DNA of 51,469 nucleotides, from the NCBI RefSeq assembly GCF_001194135.2, contig NC_068987.1:94871298-94922766 (forward strand). Direction: 5' to 3'. The notes beneath the pieces are model-generated. The model saw only the letters and a program-made list of their open reading frames with translations, had not been told where the DNA came from and did no database searches. The stretch is from Octopus bimaculoides. Lineage: Eukaryota. Shown one piece after another: positions 2,990-51,320 of this stretch (its first letter is position 1; the number at the start of each line of letters is the position of its first letter). A program made the position numbers and the translations under genes.

Positions 2990-3237
2990 GTGCAGTCCAG
3001 ACTAAAGTCACATACCTCCCAGATGGCGCTGTTGTCATCGTCTTTCCATCGAACCTTACTGTTGCCTTGGAAACCAGAGGTCATCCGATCCTCGAGAGTA
3101 AACACAGGATGCATTTCAAGCGGAAAATGATCATTCCAAATTTGTATGTGCACAGACTGGAGTGGCGCTTCTACCTTGACCGATCCGGTCGTCCAAAACA
3201 GAACCGCTTACTTGAACGGATTGGACGTCGATTGAGG
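2990..3237 (+). CDS. TENM: Teneurin internal exon (first in window), YD-shell region; upstream exons lie outside the window
   Basis: Acceptor TAG ends at 2989 (phase 1) and donor AGG|GTAGGG is at 3237/3238 (phase 0). Translation GAVQTKVTYLPDG...HRLEWRFYLDRSGRPKQNRLLERIGRRLR matches the teneurin EWR...GR(R/K)LR segment. Splicing to 27728 gives RRLR|INGVNLLTVEYNR, the conserved RRLRVNGxNLLxxxYDR motif. Confidence 0.9.
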
Positions 3238-3312
3238 GTAGGGCCATACTTCTCCCGGCATGCCAGCATGCATGGTTCGCATGACGACGGATACAAAGGA
3301 AAAGCATTGCTG
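3238..3312 (+). CDS. TENM: Candidate in-frame exon extension (25 aa, VGPYFSRHASMHGSHDDGYKGKALL) using a downstream 5' splice site
   Basis: 75 nt with no stop codon, CpG-rich like the exon, ending at CTG|GTATGT (phase 0, the same phase as the upstream donor). Confidence 0.55.
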
Positions 3313-3755
3313 GTATGTGAGACTTTGACTTTTTCTTGTTGCTTTTTTTGTTACTTTCCCCAACTAAATCCCTTCTATTCCTTTCCCATGTTGTTGTCTG
3401 GGGATCATTGATGCAAATGTAGTGTGTTTGATTTGGCTGATGAATACATATACAACAGTGGGAACAGCTTTTTTCTAATCAACAAGAAATGATAAAATTA
3501 AGATGAAATATTCTATTAGATTTTGAAGTTTCACTTGTTTCGCGATGGTGTATTCAAAGTGGAACACTTGTAGTATGAGAGGATCTTTAGGTGACCATTT
3601 GAAATACAGGCGTAGTTATAATCCATTTTGTGTTATTTTGTAGGGGTATGTTTCTTATATATTTAATGGTCAGTAGCAAGTCACTGGCATAAAGCAAGAG
3701 ACTTGATATTATTATAAAAAAACAAAAAATGAAAAGTGATAATTTATGAGGTATA

Positions 3756-4030
3756 TGTGGTCTGATCAATAAATATCTGGACTGATGTCATAGTAACAAA
3801 GCTAAAGCACACAGCATAAATTTGCTTAGCACAAATTGACCTTAACCTCTGCTGTGCATGTGCACTAAGTTTTAATGTTCTAGCTCACTTCTGCTGTTAA
3901 CAGCAGTGCTTTGAAGGAACGTGTGTAGCGTGTGATCATTGCATTGACCATCACAGAAAAGGTTGAGCAGAGAATCTGCATCAAATTTTGTCAAGAGCTT
4001 GGCAATACTTGCTCAGAGACCTCCGCAAAG
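3756..4030 (+). mobile_element. Mariner-family DNA transposon 5' end (left terminus, leader, transposase N-terminal HTH start), decayed
   Basis: TA followed by TGTGGTCTGATCAATAAATATCTGGACTG resembles a mariner terminus. The frame reads EKVEQRICIKFCQELGNTCSETSAK, similar to mariner EQRxxIKFC...xxxET. Confidence 0.8.
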
Positions 4031-4366
4031 TTTTCAACAGGTTTTCATTATTCTCGATACAATCAAAGAGATTTTGTGGAACTGAAACCCGAGTGTCTTT
4101 TTGGTCAGCTGAAAGCAGTTTTGGCACAAACTTGGCAGACACACATATCTCATACCCAAATCTTCAGTGAACCATAACTAATCTGCACATGGTGGTTCTA
4201 CAACTGCCCCTCAAAGCTGCACACACATCTGTTTCTCAGTTCTGCTGATTGCAAGTCTCCTAGAACGTTCGTCATTATCAGCGTTTCTTCAGCCATCTTA
4301 GAAACATCTGAACCTCTCGTACACTCGTGTGCAGCTCCTACACACCTCTCCATACACTTTCTGCAA
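4031..4366 (-). mobile_element. Continuation of the same mariner transposase, inverted
   Basis: Minus strand reads LQKVYGEVCRSCTRVYERFRCF*DG*RNADNDERSRRLAISRTEK...QISYGS...TEDLGMR...VSAKFVPKLLSADQKDTRVSV...CIENNENLLK (HTH, DxxRSGRP-like motif and WVPxxL-type linker). Confidence 0.85.
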
Positions 4367-6475
4367 AATTCTTATCACTATGGATTAGCATTAACTGCAT
4401 ATTAATAGGTTTAAAAGTCACAACTTCTTTCTCTCGTGACGAAATATCAAAGTAAATCCTTCAGTTATGCTTTCTGTAGGCTGCAGAGTTCGAAATTTTA
4501 ATTTACAAATAATAAAATCTAGAAAACAACAAGCACTTTCAAAATCTTGGCCGTTACTTGCAATCTTAAAAAACATTCATGCATAAAATTTGAATTTAGT
4601 TTCCTCTTATGTAATACATATTTTGCAAGCTTAAGCATGGTAGTTATTAACAAAACTAATAATTAGCAAGTAGTTTTAATTTTTTTTTGTTAAAAATAAA
4701 ACCTTAAAATATTATGAATGCAGAAGTGCATGTTTCATAGAAGTTGGTAATTAAATTTGTATTGTTTTGTTAAAAGAAGTCAAAACAATAATATTCATTT
4801 GTTTTACGTTGCAAACATTGCTGAGATGAATATGGTAATGAGGCATTGTTTTTACAACCAGATGCCTATGCTGATATTAAACATTACCTCATTTCTGAAT
4901 AAGGGATCTCTTATTCTCCAATAGCTTTCAAGTGAACAGACCAGGTTATTGACAGGAAAGTGCCAACACCACGACCTGAATAAGCAAGCACAGATGTAAA
5001 CAAACACAGTGACACATACACACACACACACACATGTTCATACATATATATATGTGTGGGTGTGTGAGTGTGGGTGTGGGTGTGTGCATAAATTATACTT
5101 TTCTAAATTGATTTCTACTTCCAAGTTTTCCTAACTCTAAGTCTGAAGCTAGTGACCACTCTACCATTGTTGGGTTATTCATTCTACACCAGAAGAGAAC
5201 TTTGCATTTACAGCCATTTGTTTACTATGTTTCTTTAAGAGAATGAAATTTATTTGGCTTTTTTGTGCACTAGATTGATAGGTGATCAGGTGGCTGGTTG
5301 GTTTCTTGAAGTTAATGTTTCAAATTATCAAATAATTAGCCTTAAAAGGCATTGTTTGCTCCTCATTTCTTGAGCTTCCATTTACACAATGGAATCTCTC
5401 TGAAATGGCTGTCCAATATGTCCATTGACATCGCTAGTCATGATGACAGTCATGTTCATTTGTTATTGAGCTAGTCAGCATTAAGGCCTCATTCAGTTGG
5501 TCCTTCAGTTCATCTGCCAGTTCAAATTGTGTAGCATATGCAAAAATGTGACAGTGACATTAATCAAGAATTAGTCGATATTGCATTTGTCCTATCGCAC
5601 ATTCTCACTAGTTCGACCCCCCCCCCTTACTCATTTCCCTGAAAAAAGGATGTGTACTACACCTTCTCCATCACCACTGCCTACCCAGAAGGATTTATAC
5701 CTTTGTTCCATGCCTGTGATGCATCTAGTAAAGCCATCCTTCCATCATACCTCTTGCATACAGTATGCATTAACATGCCACCCTTTTAGCAATTCAACCA
5801 TCTCTCCAGACCTTCCATTGATTGTGGCTATCCTAGGTTTGTACACTTGATAAGAAGAGGGAGCAGCAACAGGAGAGCTGTTTTCTGAACTTTAAAATAG
5901 ATGTGCAAACGTTTGCCCAAACAACCTTCTAGTCTTACACAGATCTAAATACTCAATTATCTCCACTCAGAAACAGTCCAAATATATAACAGGAAACAAT
6001 CTTCAATCACTAAACCGTCATGGTCAAGCACTAGAGAAGAGTGTGTGCATCTAGGCACCTACAAGTCTTTAAAAAAAAAGCACATACATACATACACACA
6101 CGTATGTATGTATGTGTATATGTATGTATGTGTGTATACATGTCACACTTTTACATGCATGTATGATACGTTACTAGAGAAGAACGTTATTAAGGGTGGG
6201 TAGTGAAATGGGGCTTGGAAGACAACTGGCATATTGACATGAAGTTAGCAGTTTCTGTCAATCGCTCTGTTAATTTTATAATTACATTTGACAATTAAAA
6301 TTTGTATTGTGCTGTCATTAAGTTATTGCTAAAATTAGGTTGAAACTGATATCAAAAATAAAACTAAAATATTTCTTGAGATGCTAAAAAACCAAAAACA
6401 TTTAAGCACAGCATTTGTCCCATGTAAAACACATGAGTGTGTGTATGTGTATGTATAATGTGTGTGTGTGATTAC

Positions 6476-6612
6476 GGGCATGGGAGTGTGGTTAAGAAAT
6501 TTATTTCCCAAGTATTTGGTTTTGAATTTAGTTCCATTGTGTGGCACCTTGGGCTAGTGTCTACTACTATAGCTCCAGCCTGACCTTGTGAGTGGATTTG
6601 GTAAGATAGAAA
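6476..6612 (+). mobile_element. tRNA-like SINE 5' part with CORE-like segment, decayed
   Basis: Shares GTGG(C/T)AC(C/T)TTGGG.(A/T)AGT...TATAGC...CCTTGT.A.TGGATTTGGTA.ATAGAAA with the copy at 28241-28667. GGCACCTTGGGCTAGTG resembles the CORE-SINE domain (recalled similarity). Confidence 0.7.
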
Positions 6613-6703
6613 ATCATACCTTGACATGCTTGACTGCACTTAGCTATAGATAAGATATTAAAGTATAGTTATAGCAGTCATGGTTTATTGCTGCCAGAAT
6701 TAA

Positions 6704-6829
6704 ACACAGGTATGGCGTGGGGTTAACATATTCCCTTCACAACTATCTGATTCTGTTTCAATCCCATTGCATAGCACTCATAACAACAGTCTTCACTTGT
6801 AGTCTTGGGTCAACCAATTCTTTGTGAGT
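6704..6829 (+). mobile_element. Second, more decayed copy of the same SINE head
   Basis: Collinear similarity to 6476-6612 (GTGGGGTTAA...TCAATCCCATTGCATAGCAC...TTGGGTCAACCAA...TTTGTGAGT). Confidence 0.5.
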
Positions 6830-7527
6830 ATTACTTTGGAAGGGTTTAAATTGTGCTGAAGTTTGTTAGGGCAGCAGATGTGGATATCTTTTGCCAAAAT
6901 CTAAATCAGTGAAGTTTTTGCTGGCCAAAAGCCTTTCTCTTCAAAAGAAGTCCTTTGCAGGAACAAATTCTTTTACAATGAGTTACAGATACTTCCTTCT
7001 CTCCCTCCCCTGAAATGCAGAGTGAACCAGTGACTAGATAATGCTGCACTTGTGCAATTGTTCACCATTTGCAGTGTTACAAATGCCATGTCATATATTT
7101 GGATGAAACAACTCTATATTTTCCATTTCACTTAGCTATAAAAAAAAAAGATCTTTCAAAAATATTTAATGAGTTAGGCCAAAGCAGACTGATTGTTTAA
7201 CCCAAAGGAAATGCAAACCAATTTTATGGTATTCAATGCATTCTTAGTCTTACATTTTCAATACACAGCTGTAAGAAGACTCAAAATATTTTGCTATGTT
7301 AAGAAAAGAATTATAAATTAAGTAGAAATTTCTTTTAGGAGAAAACATTTTTTTTTTAAATGTTGTAATTACTTTTGTAGTCAGAATACATAATGTGGAT
7401 GTTGTGTTTTGGGGCAGAGTATCTATTCAGTAACTTAACCTTTTGTAAGAATGACAATATTATACAAGTACTACTTTGTAACAATGTCAATACAAGTATT
7501 GAAGCAGTGTTGAGCCTATCACTTTCA

Positions 7528-7531
7528 TTAC

Positions 7532-7570
<39 letters not shown>

Positions 7571-7590
7571 CATTAGTGTGTGTGTGTTTG
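7528..7590. repeat. (ATT)n plus (TG)n compound microsatellite
   Basis: Direct reading. Confidence 0.9.
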
Positions 7591-8224
7591 TGTCAGTGAA
7601 TCCCCTCTCTACCTATCAACAAATTGAAGCCTCACCTCAGAGAAATCCTATTTCTTGCAATGTTTTATCCATTCCAAAAAAAATCATTTGCTTTGCCCAA
7701 AATAGGTTTCTTGCTTTTTATTATTCATACATATTCCCCATTTATCTATTGTCTTATTTCTTTTCAACTTATATGCACCTTGCTAATATTCCCTTTTAAC
7801 ATATTACCTGTTTCCCACCCAAGCATAATGCTCCACCAGCATATTATTATCAACTCCAGGGGCTCCATCTATATGCAAAAAAGAAAAATTCATCTCATTT
7901 TCCCAGCTGAAAAATGTATATTTGCTGCAGAAGAACTCCGCTTTGCTCTTGGATCGTTTATTTTCTTTCTTATTTTATGTGTGTATGTGGGTGGGTGGGT
8001 GTCAAATGTTTCTAGTATTTTATTAACTATAATTGTTATAGGGGTGATTCAAGGTCTAAAGACATTTCAGTCAAGTTAAGAGATTGTCCAAGAGTTTGGT
8101 CACTGCATTGGCACAATCCTGCAAGTTTTTCAGTTCCTCTTGTTTAAATTTCAGTCAAAACACAGTTTTTATGCATTAAGTTCACTTTCTTTCTCTCATT
8201 TGTAAAACAAAAGGAATATAAATG

Positions 8225-8227
<3 letters not shown>

Positions 8228-8312
<85 letters not shown>
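8228..8312. repeat. Long perfect (CA)n microsatellite
   Basis: Direct reading, about 42 units. Confidence 0.97.
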
Positions 8313-8313
<1 letters not shown>

Positions 8314-8865
8314 CACTGTTTTGCTATTCAAAGATATGATTACTGTTGAGATTATTGTTGTAAGGTTAATTAATAGAGTTCATATACACCAAGTCATGCA
8401 TAAATTCATTAATATGTTTACGAAGTCCTTTAATTAACAGCTCGTATATTTAACTTGCCATACAATGTGTTGGTCCAACTGGTTTGACAGAACCTATTCT
8501 TCTTGTATGAATAGGAGTAACTGAATTGCTTGTCAATACAGCTGCTACTCAGAGGAATATATTGCTATCTGTCTGTTGTCCCCTTTAGTAATTTCTGGAT
8601 TAAACTCTTTCAAGTTAACATCTAGATACAGTTCATGGAGAGTCTCAGCATAGAAAAGTGTAAGCACTCTATTTGCTAAGTACTCTATCACATTCATTCA
8701 TGTAGATGATAAAGAAAAAGGAAAATAACACATCGTCCAAGAAACTTGCAGTTTTGAAAATGAATAGAAACTACATAAAGTCTCAGCTTAGATTGGTCTG
8801 ATTCCTTCGGATTACGACTTACAAGAAAAGCCATTAAATGAAACTGAGTAACTTGTATACTTGCT

Positions 8866-8917
<52 letters not shown>

Positions 8918-10091
8918 NNNNNNNNNNNNNNNNNNNNNNNNNNNNNNNNNNNNNNNNNNNNNNNNNNNNNNNNNNNNNNNNNNNNNNNNNNNNNNNNNNN
9001 NNNNNNNNNNNNNNNNNNNNNNNNNNNNNNNNNNNNNNNNNNNNNNNNNNNNNNNNNNNNNNNNNNNNNNNNNNNNNNNNNNNNNNNNNNNNNNNNNNNN
9101 NNNNNNNNNNNNNNNNNNNNNNNNNNNNNNNNNNNNNNNNNNNNNNNNNNNNNNNNNNNNNNNNNNNNNNNNNNNNNNNNNNNNNNNNNNNNNNNNNNNN
9201 NNNNNNNNNNNNNNNNNNNNNNNNNNNNNNNNNNNNNNNNNNNNNNNNNNNNNNNNNNNNNNNNNNNNNNNNNNNNNNNNNNNNNNNNNNNNNNNNNNNN
9301 NNNNNNNNNNNNNNNNNNNNNNNNNNNNNNNNNNNNNNNNNNNNNNNNNNNNNNNNNNNNNNNNNNNNNNNNNNNNNNNNNNNNNNNNNNNNNNNNNNNN
9401 NNNNNNNNNNNNNNNNNNNNAACCTCATCAATTTAACTAAAAAGAAATCATGGAAATACAAATCTGTTTCTGAATTGTCTGGAATTTTGGTGCAATTGAT
9501 GCTGTGGATGCCATTTTTAAATGTTTCTTGCTGAATATTATTGTTGTTGTTGCTGCTGATATTGCTTCTCTCATACATTCTAAAGAAAAAGATTGTCTAA
9601 GACAAAAAAAAAAAAACTGACATAAAATTCTGCATTTCTATAAATTGCCACTTTTTGCAACATTTCTCCTTTTCCATGGGAATCTTCATATCTTTGCTTG
9701 GTGAATAGACGAATGGAGGCTGAAGGTGGAAATGGCCAACGTGCTGGCAGTGATGATGATGGTGTATGGCTCTGCCTAGAGAAATGGGTTTGAGGCTTTC
9801 AATCCTACTTTCTCCCCTTCTCCTTCATGTCCACAATCTTTGCACCATCCGGTTATCTTACCTCCCTGTCACCCTCTATTCTGCTAGAGCAACTTGCATA
9901 CCCACAACATGCATGACTTGACTATATAAGGGCATGCAACAAACTCCGCCTTGTATTTTCTGCTGATTATTACCAAGGAAGCAAGTCAATTGGCTTGCAG
10001 AAATGCGTGTATGTTATACTATTATAAAGCATAAAAAAATACTACTAATCCTTCATTTCTGCATCTTTTATTATTTATATTATGGGTAAGA

Positions 10092-10146
<55 letters not shown>

Positions 10147-10283
10147 CGTGTGTGTGTACACAGAGACATATACATGCACATATTATTCTTAATCAACAGA
10201 AGTTATGAAGTAACTCGTAGGTCAAGAGTTTCATGTATTGGCACTTATCACATGCATAAAACAGCCCTTGAGTNNNNNNNNNN

Positions 10284-10342
<59 letters not shown>

Positions 10343-10383
10343 TTACACGTGTGCATGTATATATATATATATATATATATAAA

Positions 10384-11785
10384 TTTTTTTTTAGTTTCAG
10401 TCCAAGGACTGTGTCCATGCCAGGACACTGCCATTTATTTTGCTCCACTTTCCCTAAATCTCCTTTGATGGATGAGGGAGTTTGACGTTGCTATCCTCAT
10501 CTGTGCTTCTTGCCTTGAGAAAGGGTCAGAAAGAGATCCAGTTTTGTTTTGAAAAGACCTACATCCATGCCATGCAGGCTTCTCAGGTTTTTTTTGAGGA
10601 TATTGAAGGGCTGTGGGCCTTTGAAACCCAAGCTGCTGCAGTATCTGGTCCTGAATCTTAAGGGCAATGTTGGGATCTTTTGTACTATGCAGAGGTGCCC
10701 CATCCTGCCATTTATGTAAGTGACAATGCCAAAGTTTGGTGCAAGTTTTTCTAGGATTTTCCAGATCTATATTACTGCATATTACTGCATATCTTTCCCA
10801 CCTTCGCTCCGGGGAGTAGAGTCTTAACTCTTTCATAACTGGATCGCTTCGAGTTCCATCATTAAATTTACATTTTGGTGACCACAGTTGGGAGCAGTAA
10901 TCCAGACAGCTTAGAATAAAAGTTCTCCAGAGGACCATTATGGTTTCCTTTTCTCTCAGTTTGAAAGTTTGAAGGATCCATCTGGCCCAGCGTCTGCATT
11001 TTTATTACTAAGTGTATCGATGCCCAGGTCATGCACTGGTTTTGATTCAGAGATTGCAATCCCTCCTGGGCCAGTGTATCCTATAAGCTTTTCATCGAGC
11101 TTCATGTGTTGGTAGTGCAGGGCTTGGAATTTTCCAACATTAAACTGTATGTTATTTTCCTCAGCCCACTTGTACATGGCATCCAACTCACATTGTAGAT
11201 GCATGTTATCTCCAGGGTTTTGTATCCTCTGAGTGACTTTTGTATTGTCTGCCTTGCTAGCAAGGGTGGCTACTTGAGTATCTGAGGGCTTGTCAGAGAG
11301 CGCCATTATGAATAGTAACAGCCCCAGGACAGTGCCCCGTGGAGCACCACACATTGTGTTTCCTCAGAGATAACCCCATTGATCACCACTACCTGATTTT
11401 TATCCTTTAGAAAGTCATACAGCCATTTTCCAAGTTTTCCAACTATGCCAAGATCACGCAGCTTGTGACAAATCATACCATGGTCGACTTTGTCAAAGAC
11501 TTTTGCAAAGCCACAGTATATCATGTCCCCATTTGAGTTGTTGAGCAGCTGCTTTAGTAGCCAGTCGTAATGCTACAAGAGTTGTGTCAGGCAGCTTCCA
11601 CCTGATCAGAAAACATGCTGGGTGTCAGTCAGCAAGTCAGTCTTTCCAAGGAATGCCATTAGTTTCCTTTGGACTTTACTGATGTGTGAAGTCAGAGAGA
11701 TAGACCTATGGTTTTAACATCTGTTTTGCTTCTGTTGTTATGAAAGAGGCATATTATTCTTTCCTTTAGATTAACCAGGAGCTAA
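10384..11785 (-). mobile_element. CR1/L2-like LINE, 5'-truncated RT region through the 3' end, pseudogenized
   Basis: Minus-strand frames: LKERIICLFH...SISLTSH; IYCGFAKVFDKVDH (from xDFxKAFDxVxH); GAPRGTVLGLLLF (from GVPQGxVLGPLLF); KADNTKV (from YADDTK); NIQFNVGKF; FILSCLDYCSQLWSP. Ends in GACTGAAAC plus an A-run. Confidence 0.9.
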
Positions 11786-11805
11786 ACCTTAAGGTTATTA
11801 CTTAA

Positions 11806-12346
11806 GGTTATTACAGAAAATTTTCTCCAAATTTCTCTGATGTTGTGGCCCCTCTCGCTAATTTGTTTAAAAAAGGGTGTCAAATTTATTTAGAGTGACA
11901 ATTGTCAGGCAATGTTTGAGAAGGTAAAAGCCATACTCATGAGTTCTCCAGTTTTGATAGGACCAGATTTTGGGAAACCAGTTAAGGTTTCCATTGATGC
12001 AAATGACGCTGGTGTCGGCAGTGTTCTGTTTGAATGAGATGCAAAGAGTATTGATCATCCTGTTTGTTATTACTCAACAAAATTTGACAATTACCAGCGA
12101 AATTATTCAACCATTGAGAAAGAAACCCTTGCTTTGTTGTTGTCATGGCAACATTTTGACGTATATTTGGGAACCACTAAGTATCTCATTGAAGTGTTCA
12201 CTGACCACAATCCGCTGACTTTTCTGCTCAAGATGAAGAACAAAAATCAGAGATGGAGTTTATCTTTGCAAGAATTTAATCTCAATATTCAGCATATTAA
12301 AGGTAAAGACAATGTCATTGCAAATGCACTATCTCATGTCAGCTGA
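11806..12346 (+). mobile_element. Ty3/Gypsy pol 3' fragment: RT thumb/connection and RNase H, ending in a stop codon
   Basis: GYYRKFSPNFSDVVAPLANL...VLIGPDFGKP...IDANDAGVGSVL...HPVCYYS...QRNYSTIEKETLALL...FDVYL...VFTDHNPLTFL...WSLSLQEFNLNIQHIKGKDNVIANALS* (frameshifted). Confidence 0.92.
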
Positions 12347-12445
12347 TTGTGTCAGGATGTTACATATATTTGTATCCCTTATGCAGTTCTCATAATTTGT
12401 CATTGTAAATAAGAAAGTTTTCACTACTTTCAACTTTCTTCCTTT

Positions 12446-12456
12446 AATGGGGAGAA
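12446..12456 (+). other. Polypurine tract of the Gypsy element
   Basis: AATGGGGAGAA lies about 100 nt after the pol stop and directly before TGTTACG. Confidence 0.6.
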
Positions 12457-12660
12457 TGTTACGTATATCTATAATCAGTGCAAAAAATGAGAAAATATAA
12501 TGAAGGAAGAGAACTTATAATGTTTTCTGAATGAGGAGAGATAAGTGTTTGTCGACACTTTTGGCAGAATTGAAATAACGTAGGTGTGTACATATATATA
12601 TATATATATATATGTTTACACCACCTATCCTCGTCTGTTGTTGCTTTTTCGTACATTCTC

Positions 12661-12711
<51 letters not shown>

Positions 12712-13011
12712 CAGGAAGTTAGCAAGGGACGAAACAGGTAATCTCATTTACTTCCTGTTAAAAGGGAGAGTTCAGAATACAGCAGGGATTGCGTGGATAG
12801 TACAAAATATGAGAGAGAGATGCATACAGATCGGACTGTTCACCACCTACCTTTGAACAATCGAGGACTGAACATGAAATTCTTTGGGTATTATAACTTT
12901 TTTTGTTACATAATTTCAATCTTTGAATATTAATTCCCTGTTTGAACAATTTCTGTTGTTGCGATCAGAAGTTTACCCCTTTTATATATAAGAATTTGCC
13001 TGATTGTAACA
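12457..13011 (+). mobile_element. Putative 3' LTR of the Gypsy element, expanded by (TA)n tracts and a short insert
   Basis: Starts TGTTAC directly after the PPT and ends GTAACA (perfect 6-bp terminal inverted repeat). No second LTR is present in the window to confirm it. Confidence 0.5.
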
Positions 13012-15204
13012 ATAGATAAAACAATTAATGGTATGAAGACAGGGAAAGCCCCGCAACCCATCAGGAATCACTGCAGAGATGCTCAAAATATCTGGTGGTG
13101 TCAGCTATAGCCTAGTCACCCGTATAGTCAACCAAGTGATTCATGAAGGAGTCATACCCAATGACTGGTGTTGCAGCACCATAGATACAAATAATTACAG
13201 AGGTATCAAGTTGTTGGATCAGGTAATGAAGGTCACGGAGAGGGTCATAGCACAACTAATTAGGGAGAGAGTCAGTTTAGATGAGATGCAGTTTGGGTTC
13301 GTGCCAGGGAAAAACACCACTGATGCTATATTTCTGGTAAGACAGCTTCAGGAGAAATATCTAGCCAAAGATAAAACTCTGTACTTGGCTTTCATTGATA
13401 TAGAGAAAGCCTTTGATAGGGTCCCCCGATCCCTTATCTGGTGGTCAATGAGGAAACTAGGGATAGAAGAATGGTCCACCAAGGCTCTGTCCTCAGCCCC
13501 CTCCTATTTATCATAGTCCGCCATGCAATAACAGAGGAATTCAAGTCAGGATGCCCCTGGGAGCTCCTCTATGCTGATGACCTTGCACTAATTGCTGAGT
13601 CACTACCAGAACTAGAGGAGAAGTTTCAGGTGTAGGAGCAAGGATTAAAATCAAAGGGCCTTAGAGACAACCTAGCTAAAACCAAAATCTTAATAAACAG
13701 GATGGCAGACAAAACACAAATCCCTTCAGGTAGATGGCCCTACTTGATCTGTAGAAAAGGCGTGGGTAGAAACTCTATAAGATGTACCCAGTGCAAGCTA
13801 TGGACACATAAGAGGTGCAGCTGTATCAAAGGAAGGTTAACTGGGAACATAGTTATTGTATGTGGCAAATGCTCAGGAGCAATAAACACTGAAAATGTGC
13901 AGAGAACAGCTTCTGTCACATTCCAGGGAGAAAAACTAGAAGTGGTTGATAGCTTTTGTTACCTAGGTAACGAAGTCAGTAGCGGGGGTAGATGCTCTGA
14001 AAGTGTAGCTGCTAGAATAAGAATAGCCTGAGCAAAGTTCAGAGAGCTCTTACCTCTGCTGGTGACAAAGGGCCTCTCTCTCAGAGTAAAAGGTAGACTG
14101 TATGATGCATGTGTATGAACAGCCATGCTACATGGCAGTGAAACATGGCCATAACTGCTGAGGACATGTGTAAGCTTGCAAGGAATGAAGCTAGTATGCT
14201 CCGATGGATGTGTAATGTCAGTGTGCATACCCGACAGAGTGTTAGTATCTTGAGAGAAAAGCTGAACATAAGAAGCATCAGTTGTGGTGTGCAAGAGAGA
14301 CGATTGCACTGGTATGGANNNNNNNNNNNNNNNNNNNNNNNNNNNNNNNNNNNNNNNNNNNNNNNNNNNNNNNNNNNNNNNNNNNNNNNNNNNNNNNNNN
14401 NNNNNNNNNNNNNNNNNNNNNNNNNNNNNNNNNNNNNNNNNNNNNNNNNNNNNNNNNNNNNNNNNNNNNNNNNNNNNNNNNNNNNNNNNNNNNNNNNNNN
14501 NNNNNNNNNNNNNNNNNNNNNNNNNNNNNNNNNNNNNNNNNNNNNNNNNNNNNNNNNNNNNNNNNNNNNNNNNNNNNNNNNNNNNNNNNNNNNNNNNNNN
14601 NNNNNNNNNNNNNNNNNNNNNNNNNNNNNNNNNNNNNNNNNNNNNNNNNNNNNNNNNNNNNNNNNNNNNNNNNNNNNNNNNNNNNNNNNNNNNNNNNNNN
14701 NNNNNNNNNNNNNNNNNNNNNNNNNNNNNNNNNNNNNNNNNNNNNNNNNNNNNNNNNNNNNNNNNNNNNNNNNNNNNNNNNNNNNNNNNNNNNNNNNNNN
14801 NNNNNNNNNNNNNNNNNNNNNNGACACGAAACTCGGCTTGCAAAGACCTGTTAGGGAAAGCGAAATTGTGATGGCACCTGTGCCCAGCATCGCCTTCTTG
14901 GCACGTGTAAAGACATTCGAGCGAGATCATTGCCAGTGCCGCTGGACTGGCTCCTGTGCAGGTGGCACGTAAAATACACCATTTTGAGCGTGGCCGTTGC
15001 CAGTATTGCCTGACTGGCCTTCATGCTGGTGGCATGTAAAAGCACCCACTACACTCTCGGAATGGTTGGCATTAGGAAGGGCATCCAGCTGTAGAAACTC
15101 TGCCAAATCAGATTGGAGCATGGTGTAGCTATCTGGTTCACCAGTCTTCACTCAAATCGTCCAGCCCATGCTAGCATGGAAAGTGGACATTACACGATGA
15201 TGAT
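13012..15204 (+). mobile_element. RTE-clade LINE: 5'-truncated RT with PHD-like insert, N-gap, then 3' UTR and (GAT)n tail
   Basis: MKTGKAP..GITAEMLK; NYRGIKLLDQVMKV; QFGFVPGKNTTDAIF; LAFIDIEKAFDRVP; VHQGSVLSPLLF; LLYADDLAL; FCYLG; MLHGSETW; RLHWYG. Stops and internal deletions are present. Continuity across gap 14319-14822 is inferred, not seen. Confidence 0.88.
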
Positions 15205-15205
15205 A

Positions 15206-15248
<43 letters not shown>

Positions 15249-16379
15249 ACACACATATTATACTTAATGTAATATTTACATATGTGTGTATAAACGCATG
15301 TGTGTGTGAATGAAGGATAACTTGATTCTTCTTTTGTTATTAATAGTCTTCAAGAGACGGTTTATTTTCATAGGGATCATACAAGGCTAATGTGTGGCCA
15401 TTAGGGGTTGACTGGAAGGGAGTTTTCTGCAGGAAATGAGATGAGTTTATTTAACATGCCTAGTGGAAGTAATGGAAAGTAATTGTTGTTTTCCAATGAT
15501 TATTCTTTGTCTGAAGCCAAAACCCAGGAAGGATGCAATGATGTCATAAGCTAATTAATAGCAAAAGCTATCTTAAATAAAATCTAGTAATTAGATAAAT
15601 TTTTTAAAGGCTTGAGTTTTACAGTATAGAATACATTGAAAGATTTATGTGAAGCAAAATAGATTTCAGGTTATGGCATTGTGTAATGCAGTAATAATTT
15701 ATTGGAAATTTCTTCTGAAGGTAAGTATTGCCACCACAGAAAAGTGGGAATGAATAATGCATTTTGGATATGTTTGGTGTGGTGGAAAGATTTTGTATAA
15801 TTAAATGATGAGCCATTAAAAACTATGTGAGATTTTCTTTATTGATATGAAGATTTTTGTATGATGTATATTTTAAATTTTACTTTTTACATTTTGCTAA
15901 CTCATAAATTTAGAAAAATTTAATATAAGTTCAATTTTAATGGAAATATCTAAAGGTATACAAGTAGATAAAAATTTCTTCTGAGAATGAATTTGCCATC
16001 TTCCCCATTTTCCAAGCATCAATCATGGTGAGTGAGTGAAATGAGGCTGAAGAAATATAATTTCAAGATATCTGCTGTCTCATGGATAATAACTAAATTT
16101 GGAGAGAAAACCATTCTTATTTAGAAAAATTGAAGCCAGATAAACTATGGGTATATCTTAATTCAAACTTTCAAACAACTCTCAACACATTGACAATGAT
16201 TACAACTGGAGTAAATTTTATTACCATTTATTTTATTTTCTACTTTAGGTTTTTTAATTACAGTGGAATAAAATGTATTATTGGTCTTCTTCATTCACAT
16301 TTGAGAAGATATTCTATTGATATTATGCTTTGGTGGGTAATATTTTAGAAGAGTCGTATAAATATATATATACATACAT

Positions 16380-16418
<39 letters not shown>

Positions 16419-17014
16419 NNNNNNNNNNNNNNNNNNNNNNNNNNNNNNNNNNNNNNNNNNNNNNNNNNNNNNNNNNNNNNNNNNNNNNNNNNNNNNNNNN
16501 NNNNNNNNNNNNNNNNNNNNNNNNNNNNNNNNNNNNNNNNNNNNNNNNNNNNNNNNNNNNNNNNNNNNNNNNNNNNNNNNNNNNNNNNNNNNNNNNNNNN
16601 NNNNNNNNNNNNNNNNNNNNNNNNNNNNNNNNNNNNNNNNNNNNNNNNNNNNNNNNNNNNNNNNNNNNNNNNNNNNNNNNNNNNNNNNNNNNNNNNNNNN
16701 NNNNNNNNNNNNNNNNNNNNNNNNNNNNNNNNNNNNNNNNNNNNNNNNNNNNNNNNNNNNNNNNNNNNNNNNNNNNNNNNNNNNNNNNNNNNNNNNNNNN
16801 NNNNNNNNNNNNNNNNNNNNNNNNNNNNNTCCTTCTTGTTTACTCCAAATTGTTTTCAGTTATCTATTCACACATGACAAATGTCCAAACACAAACCTGG
16901 AAGTATGTATAATACCGCTTGCTCCTGGATAGCACAGGGTGAAATCTGAAGGTGGAGGAGCTTTATACTCTACTCTGCTACGTTCTTTACAGAATATACC
17001 ATAACTATATATAT

Positions 17015-17063
<49 letters not shown>

Positions 17064-18763
17064 TTAGCCCCTAATAAAGTAACAAATTCTAGATATGATA
17101 GTAACTGTGCTCCTTATTGAAGTCAGTCATGTGGTCTTGATCATGTTACTTATGCAAAAATGAAACAGCTGATTCAGTTGCATAGGGAGTCAATTTGCAG
17201 TTTGCTTTTAGCATCACTGTCCATATACTAACAATATTTTTATATGAATACATCAATATATCTAAACATTATTTGTGCATAATAATTGTTAGCAGGTGAG
17301 TTGATGCACATAGCAATAGTGAAATGCCTTTTTATTTTTAAGTTGCTACTTGCATAGGAAATAAGGAAGCAAGAATCTAAGCTTAAAACACACAGACAGA
17401 TAAACTAAATTTATTTGAGGTATGGCATTATTAGGACATGTGTAAACATGATACATGATTCTCCTCCCTGTGATGCCCCTTGCATTTGCATATTGGGTAG
17501 GAATAGGCCAAGCACACGGTTCATTTATTTGTTTATTTTCTGTAGCAATTTATATCTCAAAGCTTCTTTTTATTGTGTAAAGGAGTGTGTGCTTGTGTGT
17601 TCTTTTCCACTCTTTCTCTTCTGTCTGTCTGTCTGTATGTCTGTATGTCTGTCTGTCTCTCTTTCTTTTAGTTGTTGAGATTAATTGTCTGTGTTACTCT
17701 GTGTTTTATGGATGAAATTAAGCCAAATTATTAACCTACTAACATTAGCTAACTGGTATTGTAGTAATGAGTCTGCTTTAATTTTAGCGACATATCTAAT
17801 TGCTGCCCGATGATGGTAATGTGTGATATTGTTGCAAAAGTCAATACTGGAGAGAGAGAGAGATGTGGGGTAGGAATAGCTAGGGGTGGGTGGTTCTGGA
17901 TGACGGCATATAAAGGACAATTGCTACTGCCAGTTCTGCTGTTGTTTTAAGGGGATAAGAATTGTTTCATGCCAATTAATTAATCAATTGAATTAAATAA
18001 TATAACCTCTCCTGCATCTGTGTGTGTGTGTGTAGTGATGTTTGTGGAGAGCACCGTTTGTAGTAATCATGACAATGGTGTTTGCTTGAGTAAAGTAGAT
18101 GAAGATGATGATTAATGGGGGTAGGCTATGCTTATGTGATGTTCACAAAGAAACTTTTCCGTATATGACTGTCAAGATATAATGTAGTGAAGGTGATTGT
18201 GAGAGTTGTGTTCATTGTGATGGTCATTTTATTACGCAAGGGTAAGGCATTAATTCTGAGTAGTCAGGGCAAGACAGTGAAATTTCTCAGTGAATAAGTT
18301 CATAAATACAACCGGTCTACAGTGATATAATATATTAGAGTTTAGAGCTGAACTGAGCCACTGCACTGATTAGTCAGAGGTAACGAAATTATTTGCTTTC
18401 AACTTGTAATTTCCTTTATTCTGAGTCTGCACTCTCTTCTAATCAAGGAAACATTGGATATAGCAGCAGCCTTTTGGCATAAAACTAACATTGAAGGGAA
18501 GTAGGAAAAAAAAACAAAAAAACTATTGATTTTTTGAACTAGCACTGGGACACAAACTTATAAGGTATACAGATAATCAATTAATTCCTCCCTAGTTCAT
18601 GACTGGTATTCAGTTCACCAAGTCTAGAAAGGGAGGAAAGGGACAAAAATCAACAACAGTGATTTTTAAAAATTAAACATAAAAAAGAAAATGATAAATA
18701 CTTTTCTATGTTTAACCATCTCTTTCACCTTTTGAATAATAATAATAATAATAATAATAATGG

Positions 18764-18963
18764 TTTCAATTTTGGCACAAGGCCAGCAATTTTAGGAGAG
18801 AAGTACTTCAATTACATCGACCCCAGTGTTCAACTGACACTCATTTTTATTGACCCTGAAAGGATGAAAGACAAAGTGAACTCAGCAGAATTTGAACTCA
18901 GAACATCAAGATGGATGAAGCAGTTAGCCCAGAATGCTAATGATTCTGTTAGCTTGCTGCCTT
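18764..18963 (-). mobile_element. tRNA-like SINE of a second family, near full length
   Basis: Reverse complement is collinear with the + copy at 47549-47752 (TTCTGAGTTCA...CTTTG.CTTTC...GATAA...GCTGGCCTTGTG.CAAAATT(T)GAAA) and is bordered by (AAT)n. Confidence 0.75.
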
Positions 18964-19689
18964 AGTTATGATGATGATGATGATGACGACGACATACTGA
19001 TCGCTACCTGATGGCAATGATGACCACATTAGCTGATCATCTTCAATATATTATCTGTATTTAATGACATTGGTGGTGAAATAACTCATAACGGAATACA
19101 AGAGGACGTGTCTCATTGATGAAAAGAGATGACAGCTTCATGGCCTCAAAATCAGCTGAAGCAACAGGGAACTCATTCTTTAAAGGTTCAGACCCCACTC
19201 CGCAAAAAGTCAGTTTTGTGAACAACAACCAGGACAGTTTATAAGATTGTCAGAAGAGTATAAGGGAACATATAAACTTGGAATACATGACTGGTATTTC
19301 ACCAAGTGAATGGGATCTGAAATTTGAATGTTAAGGGCCAAAATGAAATACCTCTTTAATTCTCCAACAATACTGTTAGTAATGATAATTGATCAGAGAC
19401 AATGCTAGACAAACTAGCACAGTTGAATGATTGCGGAAATCTATTATATTCCACTGTGTTTAGCATGGTTAATCATTTCTGGAGCGGCTCAAATCTTCTT
19501 GGATTCCTCTTTATATTTCATCTCTCTCTCTGGGCCAGTAAAATAAGCATCTTTAATTTATCAGAATAAAGTCAATATTTAATATCCTATTTCTAAAGGT
19601 AACTCTCTGCCACAAAAAACAAAGAAAACAATCAAGAAAACGACAAAATGAAAGAGCCTGATAAAGAAATCAATATCAAAACAACAACT

Positions 19690-19735
19690 GCAGCAGCGGC
19701 AGCGGCAGCAGCAGCAGCGGCAGCAGCAGCAGCAG
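19690..19735. repeat. (GCA/GCG)n trinucleotide repeat, intronic
   Basis: Direct reading. Confidence 0.9.
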
Positions 19736-20705
19736 TATTTTGGTTTAGCTTTAAGCTACTGCTGCTTGTTTTGTTGTTGATCATGTGTTTTAGATGATTT
19801 AATTAATTTTATTCGATGAAGTGGAGTTTCCAACTTTCTACTACTGAATACTCATCATTTATCGAATTATTGCGTCGATAATTTCATTATTTTAAACAAT
19901 TTTATTTTTTTATTATTAGATGATAATAATAATAATAATAATACTAATAATAAAAAAAATTGATGATAGAAAAAGCATTTTAAAATTTATTCACTTATGT
20001 TTATTAGTTTTGTTTTTTTTTCCTAAAAATTCTTTGTTTTAGAGAATTTTTTAAAATCTAAAACTAAGAAAAATATAATTGTATTCCTCTTTCAATGTTT
20101 AGGTTTTGTATCAGGCAAAACAATCTCTCCATGTCACCAAGAGAGTGTTGTGTGTCTTATAACAAACATTGTTGATACATTTGTTTTGTAGGCAAAAAGA
20201 AGTTATCACCATCAAAACATTGCCAGAGGAAATCAGATTGTTTTGGTGAGAGGATGACTTGAGACTTGTGTAGTAAAGCTCAACTCATTAGTGGTGCTCT
20301 CAGAGTGCCATTTACAAGTCTCAATGGCGTTGGAACATCAGGGACAGTTCTTCCCCTGCTGACTAATTTATCTCTCATATTTTTATACATCCATCCGTCC
20401 TTCCATTCTTATACAAGACAAGGCATAAATAATGGTGATTACATATTTTCCTTTATTGTGGAAAGAATATGTAATGAGCACTCTTTATGGCTTGTCTTGT
20501 CTATCACTCTGTGTGGAAACCAGTGTAACTGGAGCACAACCATTGATTTACAATATAGAATGGCAATGAACTAAAACTTTGGACCTTGCCACAAAAATGC
20601 ACAGAGTTCCTTATCAATCTAAACAATATTGTTAGCCTGGTGTACAAACAGGGAGCTTATAAAGGATTTTGCCCCGATTGATAATCCCTCATTAATAACT
20701 CTGAC

Positions 20706-20758
<53 letters not shown>

Positions 20759-21342
20759 NNNNNNNNNNNNNNNNNNNNNNNNNNNNNNNNNNNNNNNNNN
20801 NNNNNNNNNNNNNNNNNNNNNNNNNNNNNNNNNNNNNNNNNNNNNNNNNNNNNNNNNNNNNNNNNNNNNNNNNNNNNNNNNNNNNNNNNNNNNNNNNNNN
20901 NNNNNNNNNNNNNNNNNNNNNNNNNNNNNNNNNNNNNNNNNNNNNNNNNNNNNNNNNNNNNNNNNNNNNNNNNNNNNNNNNNNNNNNNNNNNNNNNNNNN
21001 NNNNNNNNNNNNNNNNNNNNNNNNNNNNNNNNNNNNNNNNNNNNNNNNNNNNNNNNNNNNNNNNNNNNNNNNNNNNNNNNNNNNNNNNNNNNNNNNNNNN
21101 NNNNNNNNNNNNNNNNNNNNNNNNNNNNNNNNNNNNNNNNNNNNNNNNNNNNNNNNNNNNNNNNNNNNNNNNNNNNNNNNNNNNNNNNNNNNNNNNNNNN
21201 NNNNNNNNNNNNNNNNNNNNNNNNNNNNNNNNNNNNNNNNNNNNNNNNNNNNNNNNNNNNNNNNNNNNNNNNNNNNNNNNNNNNNNNNNNNNNAAGGGAG
21301 ATATAATAAAAACAACAACATGAAGATCTCTTAGATGACTCG

Positions 21343-21478
21343 GCGTTAGGAAGGGCATCCAGCTGTAGAAACTCTGCCAAATCAGATTGGAGCCTGGTGT
21401 AGCCATCCGGTTTCACCAGTCCTCAGTCAAATCGTCCAACCCATGCTAGCATGGAAAGCGGACGTTAAATGATGACGA
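21343..21478 (+). mobile_element. RTE 3'-tail copy (truncated LINE or RTE-tailed SINE)
   Basis: GGCGTTAGGAAGGGCATCCAGCTGTAGAAACTCTGCCAAATCAGATTGGAGC...GGACGTTAAATGATGACGA is near-identical to about 15068-15204. Confidence 0.85.
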
Positions 21479-21480
21479 TA

Positions 21481-22368
21481 CAGGGTGCGATGAGTAAATT
21501 TTCACCATTTTATTTTTTTATTTTGTGTTTGCACTTTGTTTGTCTTTAATTTTGTTGACTACATAGTATAGTAAGGTCAGTTGGGAACTGTCTGTGAGAA
21601 AAACAGCAGAGTGACAGTATTCACTCTGCCAGAAATTTGGAAATGACATGCTGTACTGCTTGGCATTCATGCCAGAAGCTCTAATTTGAACATTTCAGAG
21701 TGTTTTGGTGTCAGTCTGAGGACAGTACAATCTGGGGACATGTACCGAGAATGGTAAAAATCAAACATCCAGTCAACATCATGATATTTGGAGTGATGAC
21801 TAGTGATGGTGAGATTATGTCTCCATTCATCTTCCCACACGGCCTCAGACTCAACACGGAGGCCTACATCAACTACCTGGAGGAGGTAATGCTGCCCTGG
21901 GTCAAGAGGGTGGCTGCTGGAAGACACTATGTCTGGCAACAGGACTCTGCACCATGCCACACAAGCAGGGGAACCCAGTCATGGCTGTCAGCCAATTTCT
22001 ACGACAACATCAACCCTAACATCTGGCCACCTAACTCCCCAGACTGCAACCTCTTTGATTCTTATGTGTGAGGTGCAGTTGAGCAAGAGACCAACAAAAC
22101 ACCTTATAATTCCAGAGATGAATTGAGGGCAAGGATTATGGTAGCATTCCCCAACTTAAAAAAGGAGACTGTTCCCAAAGACTTGCAGGAGATTCCGAAG
22201 TAATCTGGATGTCGTGGTTGAAGTCAAATGGCAATTTTATTGAATAAATTTACTCTTTAGCATTTCAAGATATTTTAAAGTAATTTTGGTAAATATATGT
22301 TAAAACAAGATGTCAGTGGTATTTTCATTTTTGCATAATTTAGACGACAGTTTATTCACCACACCCTA
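21481..22368 (+). mobile_element. maT-family (DD37D) Tc1/mariner transposon, internally deleted, both termini present
   Basis: TA target duplication at 21479-80 and 22369-70. Imperfect TIRs CAGGGTGCGATGAGTAAATTTTC / revcomp TAGGGTGTGGTGAATAAACTGTC (17/23). Catalytic region WQQDSAPCH...WPPNSPDCNLFD has 37 residues between the last two Asp. Confidence 0.88.
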
Positions 22369-23205
22369 TACACACACATACATACATATGAACATATTTA
22401 TGTGTTCACACATCCAACTTCAGACATAGTAAATGTGTTTCTAAGCTTCAAAATTGTTAAAGAGATATTTGGCGTGTGTCCATTTCTTCTTTGTATCTAT
22501 ACAAATTTCATAGAAGCTCTTAAAAATGTCTCTGATACCCATACACATTCAGTCAGTTCCCTTTGCATTGATATTTATTGATTTAAATTCAGTACACAAA
22601 ATATTATGGCTGGACTGGCCTGTATCAATAAGGAAATCATATGAAATTAATAACAACAACCTTGAAATATTAATAACAAGAAATATTAGAAGCCATAATG
22701 ATGATGGTGATGGTGATGATGATGAGGAGGAGAAGGAGGATAATGAAAACATAACCCAGTAATTAATAACAACAGAAATTCTGGAAAATGCCTTGGCAAA
22801 CAACTCAGCTTTCCGTTCCTAATCATTTGTGGAGGATTCTTTTGGTTGATGGAATCTTTGAATGATAAGTTCTAGAATTTCATGATGAAATGATGACAAT
22901 CATTCACCATAAATTACATGCACATGGATGTGAGTGTTCCTTTATTCATTTCAGTGATGCCATTGCGACCATGCTGGAGCACTGCTATGATTTTGCACTT
23001 CTTCATATGATTCTTCTTTGGCTGATTCCTTCCAGGTGGTGGGATTTCATATCACCACTCCTGGATCTACTTTTACATTGGTTGATGGCTAGTCAATGTA
23101 AGGGGGTGTCTGACACTGCTGCCTCATGTATGTATGTGTGTGTGTTATGTATGCATGCATATATATATAGAGAGAGACACACATACATATATACATACAT
23201 ACATA

Positions 23206-23362
23206 CGTAAAAAGCACCCACTACACTTTTGGAGTGGTTGGCGTTAGGAACATTGCCAGATCAGATTGGAGCTTGGAGCAGTTGCTGGCTCTCCAGACCT
23301 CAGTCAAATCATCGAACCCATGCCAGCATGGAAAATGGACGTTAAACGACGATGATGATGAT
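23206..23362 (+). mobile_element. Further RTE 3'-tail copy
   Basis: GTAAAAAGCACCCACTACACT...GGTTGGCGTTAGGAA...CAGATTGGAGC...GCATGGAAAATGGACGTTAAACGACGATGATGAT matches about 15036-15204. Confidence 0.8.
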
Positions 23363-23393
23363 ATATATACTTAATATATATATATATATATAT

Positions 23394-23534
23394 GTTGTTG
23401 GCACTCCATTGCTTACGACGTCGAGGGTTCCAGTTGATCCGATCAACGGAACAGCCTGCTCATGAAATTAACGTGCAAGTGGCTGAGCACTCCACAGACA
23501 AGTGTACCCTTAATGTAGTTCTCGGGGATATTCA
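23394..23534 (-). mobile_element. Probable SINE 3' end whose body runs into the N-gap
   Basis: CpG-rich block (TTGTTGGCACTCC...CGACGTCGAGGGTTCCAGTTGATCCGATCAACGG...) between a (TA)n tract and the gap. I recall it as a common octopus SINE tail but cannot verify this within the window. Confidence 0.4.
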
Positions 23535-23959
23535 NNNNNNNNNNNNNNNNNNNNNNNNNNNNNNNNNNNNNNNNNNNNNNNNNNNNNNNNNNNNNNNNNN
23601 NNNNNNNNNNNNNNNNNNNNNNNNNNNNNNNNNNNNNNNNNNNNNNNNNNNNNNNNNNNNNNNNNNNNNNNNNNNNNNNNNNNNNNNNNNNNNNNNNNNN
23701 NNNNNNNNNNNNNNNNNNNNNNNNNNNNNNNNNNNNNNNNNNNNNNNNNNNNNNNNNNNNNNNNNNNNNNNNNNNNNNNNNNNNNNNNNNNNNNNNNNNN
23801 NNNNNNNNNNNNNNNNNNNNNNNNNNNNNNNNNNNNNNNNNNNNNNNNNNNNNNNNNNNNNNNNNNNNNNNNNNNNNNNNNNNNNNNNNNNNNNNNNNNN
23901 NNNNNNNNNNNNNNNNNNNATATATATATATATATATATATACTTAATATAAATGTATA

Positions 23960-24187
23960 CAGGGACAAAATAATGGAAACACCTTAAAATTTCAAGCAAA
24001 TTTATTTCAATATGGGGTAGGACTGCCTTGAATTTACGAGGGATGGACTTGTACAAAGTTCGAATTGTTCCCAATGGAATTTTGTCCATTCTTCAGCCAA
24101 AACAGTCTGTAGTTCTTATAGTGATGATGGTGGAAGATATTGACTCCTTACTTGTTCTTCTAAAATGCACCATAAATATTCAATGAT
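23960..24187 (-). mobile_element. Tc1-like transposon 3' end (transposase C-terminus and one TIR)
   Basis: TA|CAGGGACAAAATAATGGAAACACC terminus. Minus strand reads IIEYLWCILEEQVRSQYLPPSSL*ELQTVLAEEW / KIPLGTIRTLYKSIPRKFKAV, including the Tc1 N-x-I-E-x-L-W catalytic Glu motif. Confidence 0.82.
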
Positions 24188-24239
24188 TATTTACATTATT
24201 TACATTCGACGGATATTTGTCCTCATGTTGTTTGTTGTT

Positions 24240-24285
24240 AACACAACATTTCGGCTGATATACCCTCTAGCCTTCGTCAGGTGTC
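24240..24285 (-). ncRNA. Minimal type I hammerhead ribozyme motif (Penelope-like element pLTR type)
   Basis: Minus strand 5'-GACAC CUGACGA A GGCU agaggguauauc AGCC GAAA UGU U GUGUU-3': core CUGANGA...GAAA...UH, 5-bp stem I, stem II of 4 bp or more, and a loopless stem III. Confidence 0.7.
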
Positions 24286-26422: not shown

Positions 26423-26484
<62 letters not shown>

Positions 26485-27727: not shown

Positions 27728-28027
27728 ATAAACGGTGTCAACTTGTTGACTGTTGAGTACAACCGGGAGACGAACACAGAAACTGTAATGGACAAGTCCA
27801 TGAGAGACATATTAACAGTTGTCTATGACAACACTGGCCTACCAACCCATTTCTTGCCCAACACTGGTCACAATGACTTGAATATTAGCTACACCAGGCA
27901 TGGAGCCGTAGAGAAATGGCAATATGGTGAACTTACTGAACAACGCATGTACGAGAAGGGAATGATGGTGGAAAAGATTTCCACAAATGGCGCTCAATAT
28001 CGGTATATTTATAGTTACGGGCTTAAA
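27728..28027 (+). CDS. TENM: Teneurin exon, YD repeats (100 aa, phase 0/0)
   Basis: Acceptor cttacag| at 27727 and donor AAA|GTAAGT at 28027/28028. Translation INGVNLLTVEYNRETNTE...YDNTGLPTHFLP...LNISYTRHGAVEKWQYG...YRYIYSYGLK. Confidence 0.93.
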
Positions 28028-28842: not shown

Positions 28843-28888
28843 TATGTACACATATATATATATATATATATTGCATATATACATACAT

Positions 28889-28919
<31 letters not shown>

Positions 28920-28944
28920 CATACATATATATATCGTATATATG

Positions 28945-28980
<36 letters not shown>

Positions 28981-51120: not shown

Positions 51121-51169
<49 letters not shown>

Positions 51170-51288: not shown

Positions 51289-51320
<32 letters not shown>

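Follow-up and report, generated by a model that had tools for sequence, protein, structure and literature searches.

The 51,469-nt stretch of Octopus bimaculoides DNA analysed here (contig NC_068987.1, forward-strand positions 94,871,298 to 94,922,766; hereafter the window) carries on its + strand the last four coding exons, A to D, of a teneurin gene. Exon A has two candidate ends, set by the 5′ splice sites that we call donor 1 and donor 2. On the comparative evidence presented below, the 75 nt between them is an old, translated, in-frame part of the exon that adds a 25-residue loop, VGPYFSRHASMHGSHDDGYKGKALL, to the YD shell of the protein. The two conserved donors, together with a cluster of GCAUG motifs, suggest that alternative splicing decides whether this loop is present. 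The overall explanation that we favour, with a probability of roughly 0.55, is that of a coding extension and a loop that could bear on partner binding and would be governed by two donors under regulation of the Rbfox type.

Comparative evidence for a coding extension

Donor 1 (AGG/GTAGGG, the slash marking the exon end) and donor 2 (CTG/GTATGT) are spaced by exactly 75 nt and are both in phase 0, with no intervening stop codon, the arrangement of an alternative 5′ splice site. A preliminary description of this DNA had noted as much, and had also considered the composition of the extension exon-like, turning T-rich only past donor 2. The base counts agree: the extension has 53% GC and 4 CpG dinucleotides and the exon core 49% GC, as against 36% GC, no CpG and 49% T in the next 75 nt. 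The same description had ranked donor 1 as weak and donor 2 as the stronger site. This ranking holds for the consensus, of which donor 2 matches 7 of 11 positions and donor 1 matches 5, but is reversed in the predicted duplex with the 5′ end of U1 (−9.1 kcal/mol for donor 1, −6.1 kcal/mol for donor 2).

Using the two exons flanking the junction, a protein search identified 27 genomic open reading frames (ORFs) with 48–89% identity, and all 27 read through donor 1. Their extensions share the consensus RMRVGxxFSRHxxMHDSHExGYKGKALL, and similarity ends after 'LL-VC', the GTATGT of donor 2. More distant ORFs were recovered by an exhaustive HMMER search, and in these the R-V-G start and the G-Y-x-G-K-x-L-L end are constant and the length in mid-loop varies (19–40 residues). 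In all, some 45 genomic ORFs of other animals continue through donor 1, keep the homologous loop (19–40 aa) and diverge directly past donor 2. The inserts measure 57 to 120 nt, every one a multiple of 3. In a 25-sequence alignment, R82, V83, K104 and L106 are invariant, and the GYxGKxLL anchor is conserved at the amino-acid level though its codons vary. Donor 2 is preceded by K-x-L-x in all lineages compared. The ratio of nonsynonymous to synonymous substitution (dN/dS) in the extension is ∼0.2, and synonymous divergence there is 0.35 as against 0.78 in the core. In the closest relative (L001), DNA similarity to the window is 79.8% from the acceptor of exon A to 22 nt beyond donor 2. Past that point nothing aligns between the two, and the 24-kb intron offers no candidate for a conserved intronic element or a cassette exon. 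One 111-aa ORF, P0041, matches the loop as far as ...GEADYKG and departs from it thereafter (IDSALRNKL...), sooner than do the related P0022 and P0023; this could reflect an insertion, another donor or an assembly difference.

Donor 2 is the site used in the annotated full-length teneurins of Gigantopelta aegis (teneurin-m-like X1–X3), Elysia marginata, Pinctada imbricata and Pomacea canaliculata, all with the junction KxLL/ING, and a partial model from Lymnaea stagnalis runs into the loop. The genomic locus of Pinctada reads CGG/GTAGGG, an 81-nt insert and CTG/GTACGT. The long form is the sole form in annotated mollusc models that span the junction. Moreover, the homologous loop is joined straight to VNGxN in two mRNA-like contigs, P0037 and L020, the latter with at least 639 continuous codons.

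Teneurins of other groups lack the loop: GRxLR is followed directly by (V/I)NG in Saccoglossus, Antedon, Daphnia and other arthropod-type sequences, in fly Ten-m (8FIA) and in vertebrate Ten2, Ten3 and Ten4. The RRLR/ING junction that had been called conserved is so in vertebrates, arthropods and ambulacrarians, but the mollusc models that span it all read KALL/ING, by way of donor 2. The proposal that the 75 nt behave as exon and encode a YD-shell loop absent at this place from vertebrate and fly teneurins is borne out. Its attribution to cephalopods is not, as homologous extensions occur in gastropods, bivalves and many other invertebrate contigs; judged from these sequences, the loop is widespread in molluscs and other invertebrates and is not cephalopod-specific. 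We consider it almost certain that the extension is genuine coding sequence.

Constraint on donor 1 and the GCAUG cluster

The DNA of 30 loci was read, which we grouped into ∼15 lineages. In 14 of the 15, donor 1 is GTAGG, GTAAG or GTGAG, xGG/GTAGG being the commonest form. Variants include AGG/GTAATG in L023, AGA/GTAAGA where the next residue is Arg, and AGA or CGA/GTAAGC and xGG/GTGAGC where it is Ser. Thus, non-Gly residues at the next position have the codon AGA (Arg) or AGC (Ser), and the GT-R-R-G splice consensus is retained. Only L008 (10001–10447) deviates, with CGG/GTTGAG. The Val codon at donor 1 is GTA in 13 of 15 lineages, compared to 23 of 148 Val codons (15.5%) elsewhere in the same exons, where GTA is the rarest (binomial P = 2e-9). 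Similarly, the Arg codon before donor 1 never ends in a pyrimidine, as against 44.5% of Arg codons elsewhere. Synonymous sites of the exon core are saturated (synonymous divergence, pS, 0.71–0.80) at 35–70% amino-acid identity, and shared ancestry therefore does not explain the conservation of donor 1. We infer that donor 1 is under selection as a nucleotide signal and has been preserved as a functional alternative 5′ splice site; both donors are retained as splice sites across the lineages. The possibility that donor 1 is a fossil held by protein constraint alone was rejected on the codon-level evidence. Donor 1 is probably also used in this animal.

In two loci, L021 (JAAUYA010037764.1; 1879–2007 and 2057–2264) and L022, the homologous exon is present as a tandem duplicate. 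Copy a ends RMR/GTGAAT and lacks the extension; in copy b, donor 1 (CGG/GTGAGC) is followed by 72 nt of extension and then by donor 2. The donor of copy a and the acceptor of copy b are just 49 nt apart, and the two copies therefore look mutually exclusive.

The octopus extension contains four copies of GCATG, whose in-frame translation supplies the His residues of R-H-A, S-M-H-G and S-H-D. Four copies are not expected from the window's own density of the motif (Poisson P = 3e-6). Across loci, GCATG occurs 2.34 times per 100 nt in the extensions, 0.09 times in the exon core and 0.11 times in the next 300 nt of the intron, an enrichment of ∼25-fold. Two to four copies, and thus (U)GCAUG near a splice site, are found in the extension in 10 of the 15 lineages. 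L008, which has lost the donor-1 consensus, has none in its 63-nt extension.

This enrichment is matched by the choice of codons. His is coded by CAT and CAC in a ratio of 40:5 in the extensions and 29:42 in the core (P = 2e-7), and a G immediately precedes 38 of 45 His codons in the extensions as against 28 of 71 in the core (P = 1e-6). G also opens the codon after His, and CAT with flanking G's spells GCATG. At the level of codon usage, the choice of CAT and of the preceding G shows selection on the RNA. Because the His codons and flanking G's form GCATG, synonymous divergence is lower in the extension, where pS is 0.32–0.51, than in the saturated core (Fisher P 0.002 to 0.02 per pair). Alternatively spliced regions typically show such a reduction. 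The predicted RNA fold of 3220–3330 is nothing special (z = −0.22). The end of the extension, at 3284–3309 (GACGACGGATACAAAGGAAAAGCATT), is purine-rich in the window and in its counterpart lineages because of its K-G/E-K codons, and might also serve donor 2 as an exonic enhancer.

Database protein predictions for Branchiostoma teneurin-3-like isoforms (for example XP_035680810, XP_035680815, CAH1277709 and CAH1277705) include both donors at this junction. Four combinations are annotated: GRRIR/VNG; GRRIR+VGVSKTFSFAGQLYPFELK/VNG; GRRIR/acidic cassette/VNG; and both inserts together. Accordingly, in another phylum a V-G donor and an in-frame extension to a second donor are used both ways. The amphioxus and mollusc junctions agree in their position (GRRIR/VNG) and in the succession of upstream donor, V-G, in-frame extension and second donor. 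By contrast, the amphioxus extension is 19 aa long and has no evident similarity to the mollusc loop, and amphioxus has an extra, separate 25-aa cassette that is acidic and Tyr-rich. This cassette (DLDADLYSDVDLDSDYYPDYPDYTD; P0040 and P0176–P0189), present with or without the 19-aa exon extension, looks like a stretch of the tyrosine-sulfation type. We found no publication on these Branchiostoma isoforms. As alternative splicing is also annotated at this junction in amphioxus, an arrangement with two donors may go back to early bilaterians.

Proposed use of the two donors

Donor 2 (3313) gives the long isoform, ...GRRLR-VGPYFSRHASMHGSHDDGYKGKALL-INGVNLL, as in the annotated mollusc models and the two mRNA-like contigs. 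Use of donor 1 (3238) would drop the loop and yield the family-typical GRRLR/ING. The four GCAUG motifs are putative binding sites of an Rbfox-type regulator, and the loop histidines are the in-frame reading of CAU within them. On (U)GCAUG, Rbfox typically activates a splice site when bound downstream of it and represses when bound upstream (PMC11874969). The octopus motifs lie 21–46 nt downstream of donor 1 and 30–55 nt upstream of donor 2, so that by this rule Rbfox would be predicted to favour donor 1, to disfavour donor 2 and so to promote the loop-less form, which Rbfox-rich cells (neurons, muscle) would then produce. Provided that donor 1 is used, Rbfox-type control is the likelier case. 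As in Rbfox-regulated neuronal and muscle splicing, a conserved GCAUG cluster adjoins a candidate regulated splice site (PMC11874969). Unlike there, the octopus motifs are in translated sequence between two competing donors, and their dependence on Rbfox is putative. No link between Rbfox and teneurin splicing was found in the literature.

The insert falls within TEN_YD-shell, around profile position 262, and not in EGF7-EGF8 or NHL, the places of vertebrate sites A and B. We located the junction on chicken Ten2 using PDB chain 6ske_A, in which the residue number is the chain index + 1046 (1756 + 1046 = 2802). Chain indices 820, 847 and 1151 are the K of FGRKLR, the R of DDHRKF and the R of MFRSLMYW, respectively. 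An offset of 1046 puts K1866, R1893 and R2197 on the right residue types, and no alternative offset fits all three. In chicken Ten2, K1866 contacts the latrophilin Lec domain, and R2197 is reported to be bound by D55 (del Toro et al.). The octopus junction is equivalent to R1868/V1869, two residues past K1866. This site is on the shell's outer lateral face, and we infer that the loop is there too. The stretch of five residues that leads into ING is G-R-R-L-R in the short form and G-K-A-L-L in the long form, so that Ala takes the place of the basic residue at the K1866 equivalent. With the strand before ING altered and this basic residue lost, the switch could change partner binding; that the loop actually affects such binding is rather doubtful. 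An AlphaFold model of the 1033-aa product of exons A to D, from a 15-row alignment, was too poor for a loop conformation to be read from it: the mean predicted local distance difference test score (pLDDT) was 56 and the predicted template-modelling score (pTM) 0.31, with residues 29–116 below 50. The unsettled status of a latrophilin–teneurin interaction in invertebrates (PMC6422961) weighs against a role for the loop in latrophilin binding.

Splice inserts are known in teneurins from the EGF7-EGF8 and NHL propeller sites of vertebrates and from a 9-residue insert in the TTR domain of arthropods (PMC11058771, PMC10240212). Vertebrate site B, a 7-residue insert in the NHL beta-propeller, alters latrophilin binding and homophilic adhesion (PMC11058771, PMC6978801, PMC10240212) and is restricted to vertebrates (PMC10240212). 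The octopus insert resembles site B in being small, in frame and in the extracellular superfold of teneurin. It differs in its domain, the YD shell and not NHL, and in being an exon extension between two 5′ splice sites, of 19–40 residues across lineages. Site A (EGF7/EGF8) and the arthropod TTR insert, SIFWNYFNA, are likewise lineage-restricted alternative inserts of the ectodomain (PMC11058771; PMC10240212), but they are in other domains and neither is near the latrophilin-Lec footprint of the shell. The preliminary description knew of no insert at this YD-shell site, and the literature yielded no paper describing one; the loop is present in database gene models yet apparently undescribed.

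Whether the extension is a splice switch or a constitutive loop was left undecided by the preliminary description. The loop is established, in a lineage much wider than the cephalopods. The switch is supported indirectly though strongly, because of the nucleotide conservation of donor 1, the GCAUG cluster, the reduced synonymous divergence and the amphioxus isoforms with both donors.

Several observations weigh against the switch. No short-junction protein or transcript was found in any mollusc or spiralian in word-index searches, which included artificial skip-junction rows, although the index is patchy for long eukaryotic proteins, many of which it misses, so that the absence is weak evidence. 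Every annotated mollusc model carries the loop. Donor 1 has been lost in Lymnaea (P0209, in which Ile replaces Val to give RLR-IG) and in L008, and the loop is kept in both; the loop can therefore become constitutive. Three lineages that retain donor 1 (L025, L017-20 and L014) have no GCATG in the extension. Finally, the figure of ∼15 lineages is approximate, most comparison contigs having no taxon assignment.

These data lend some weight to the most durable alternative, namely that the loop is constitutive and made from donor 2 only, with donor 1 and the GCAUG motifs kept for other reasons, such as protein constraint on V-G, or binding of U1 or Rbfox that aids definition of this exon beside a 24-kb intron. 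It agrees with the models of five mollusc species, all with the loop and none without it, as well as with the Lymnaea and L008 loci and the lack of a short-junction protein. Protein constraint, by contrast, leaves unexplained the use of GTA, the choice of AGA or AGC and the G-preceded CAT, amphioxus employs both donors at the same site, and the lowered synonymous divergence is of the kind seen in alternatively spliced regions. We regard a constitutive loop as possible, at odds well short of even.

It is improbable that the short, vertebrate-like junction is the main product and the 75 nt are rarely included, as noise or a minor isoform. Without the 25 aa, the Pfam TEN_YD-shell match is better and continuous (profile 199–465, 127 bits, versus 262–465, 110 bits, with them), and donor 1 pairs well with U1. 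Nevertheless, the amino-acid conservation of the loop, especially of GYxGKxLL with varying codons, marks it as translated and under selection, and it is present in annotated models and mRNA-like contigs. An open intron stretch with an accidental in-frame GT deserves next to no credence and was rejected, as was a retained intron, on the comparative evidence: 25 open codons are ∼30% likely in random sequence, but all the comparative results, with conservation across many lineages, contradict it.

The favoured explanation, a coding extension with two regulated donors, has a stronger form that we advance only tentatively. In it, the extension would be an ancient splice switch in the single teneurin gene of molluscs and their relatives, at which Rbfox picks the donor and toggles the loop on the latrophilin-binding patch, turning GRRLR into GKALL. 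One gene would thereby have two adhesion specificities.

Gene structure and significance

Exons A to D join to an intact 1033-aa product with the C-terminal superfold of a teneurin: TEN_YD-shell (8.5e-108), Teneurin_ABD (4.7e-42) and Tox-GHH (4.4e-23). The N-terminal parts of the protein (transmembrane helix, EGF, TTR, FN-plug and NHL) would be encoded upstream of the window, and related loci carry TEN_NHL upstream of the homologous exon. The acceptor AG of exon A is at 2988–2989; the exon starts at 2990 and its reading frame at 2992. Exon B begins after ttacag with ATAAACGGT, that is, INGVNLL. The position of the intron between exons A and B is common to vertebrate teneurin genes, in which the genomic ORFs end ...Q/VNGRNLL.

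Features of the teneurin locus, in window positions
Feature	Position	Strand	Details
Exon A	2990-3237 (donor 1) or 2990-3312 (donor 2)	+	Basis: sequence and translation
Exon A core	2990..3237	+	Encodes ...HRLEWRFYLDRSGRPKQNRLLERIGRRLR; basis: translation, tblastn with Gigantopelta teneurin P0028, Pfam match
Donor 1, AGG/GTAGGG	3235..3243	+	GT 3238-3239, exon end 3237; the upstream one of the two 5′ splice sites
Extension	3238..3312	+	75 nt in frame; exon with donor 2, intron with donor 1
GCATG cluster, four copies	3258..3283	+	3258-3262, 3266-3270, 3270-3274 (TGCATG from 3269), 3279-3283
Donor 2, CTG/GTATGT	3310..3318	+	GT 3313-3314, exon end 3312; junction KALL/ING
Intron, ~24.4 kb	3313..27727	+	Phase 0, just before (V/I)NG
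Exon B	27728..28027	+	INGVNLLTVEYNRETN to YSYGLK; donor AAA/GTAAGT
Exon C	32377..33988	+	Rest of YD shell
Exon D	43551..44419	+	Last coding exon; ABD and Tox-GHH; stop TAA 44417-44419

Upstream of exon A, the intron has a very high AT content and contains long (TA)n and (ATT)n tracts. A ten-N assembly gap at 2813–2822 lies within a (TA)n microsatellite ∼170 nt upstream of the exon A acceptor. Two (AT)n arrays, of ∼145 and ∼200 dinucleotide copies, occupy 28852–29150 and 51061–51469, and many of the long intronic 'ORFs' in the window are simple-repeat artefacts. In L008, the intron that separates the two homologous exons contains a retroelement of the long interspersed nuclear element (LINE) type, a 1131-aa ORF with endonuclease and reverse-transcriptase domains (14348–17743).

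In annotation, exon A should be given the end 3312, with 3237 retained as a candidate alternative end. The loop appears to be a teneurin ectodomain splice insert at a previously undescribed location, the YD shell. The overlap of GCAUG with His codons clearly illustrates selection acting on a single sequence at both the protein and the RNA-regulatory level. In vertebrates, diversity comes from four teneurin genes and from two splice sites through which latrophilin binding and homophilic binding are tuned. Spiralians possess only one teneurin gene (PMC6428715), and the large-brained cephalopods belong to this single-teneurin lineage. If the switch is real, it would provide a handle on whether teneurin–latrophilin recognition exists outside vertebrates, and a third regulated site, on the shell surface to which latrophilin binds in vertebrates, would show how a single-gene lineage diversifies a wiring receptor.
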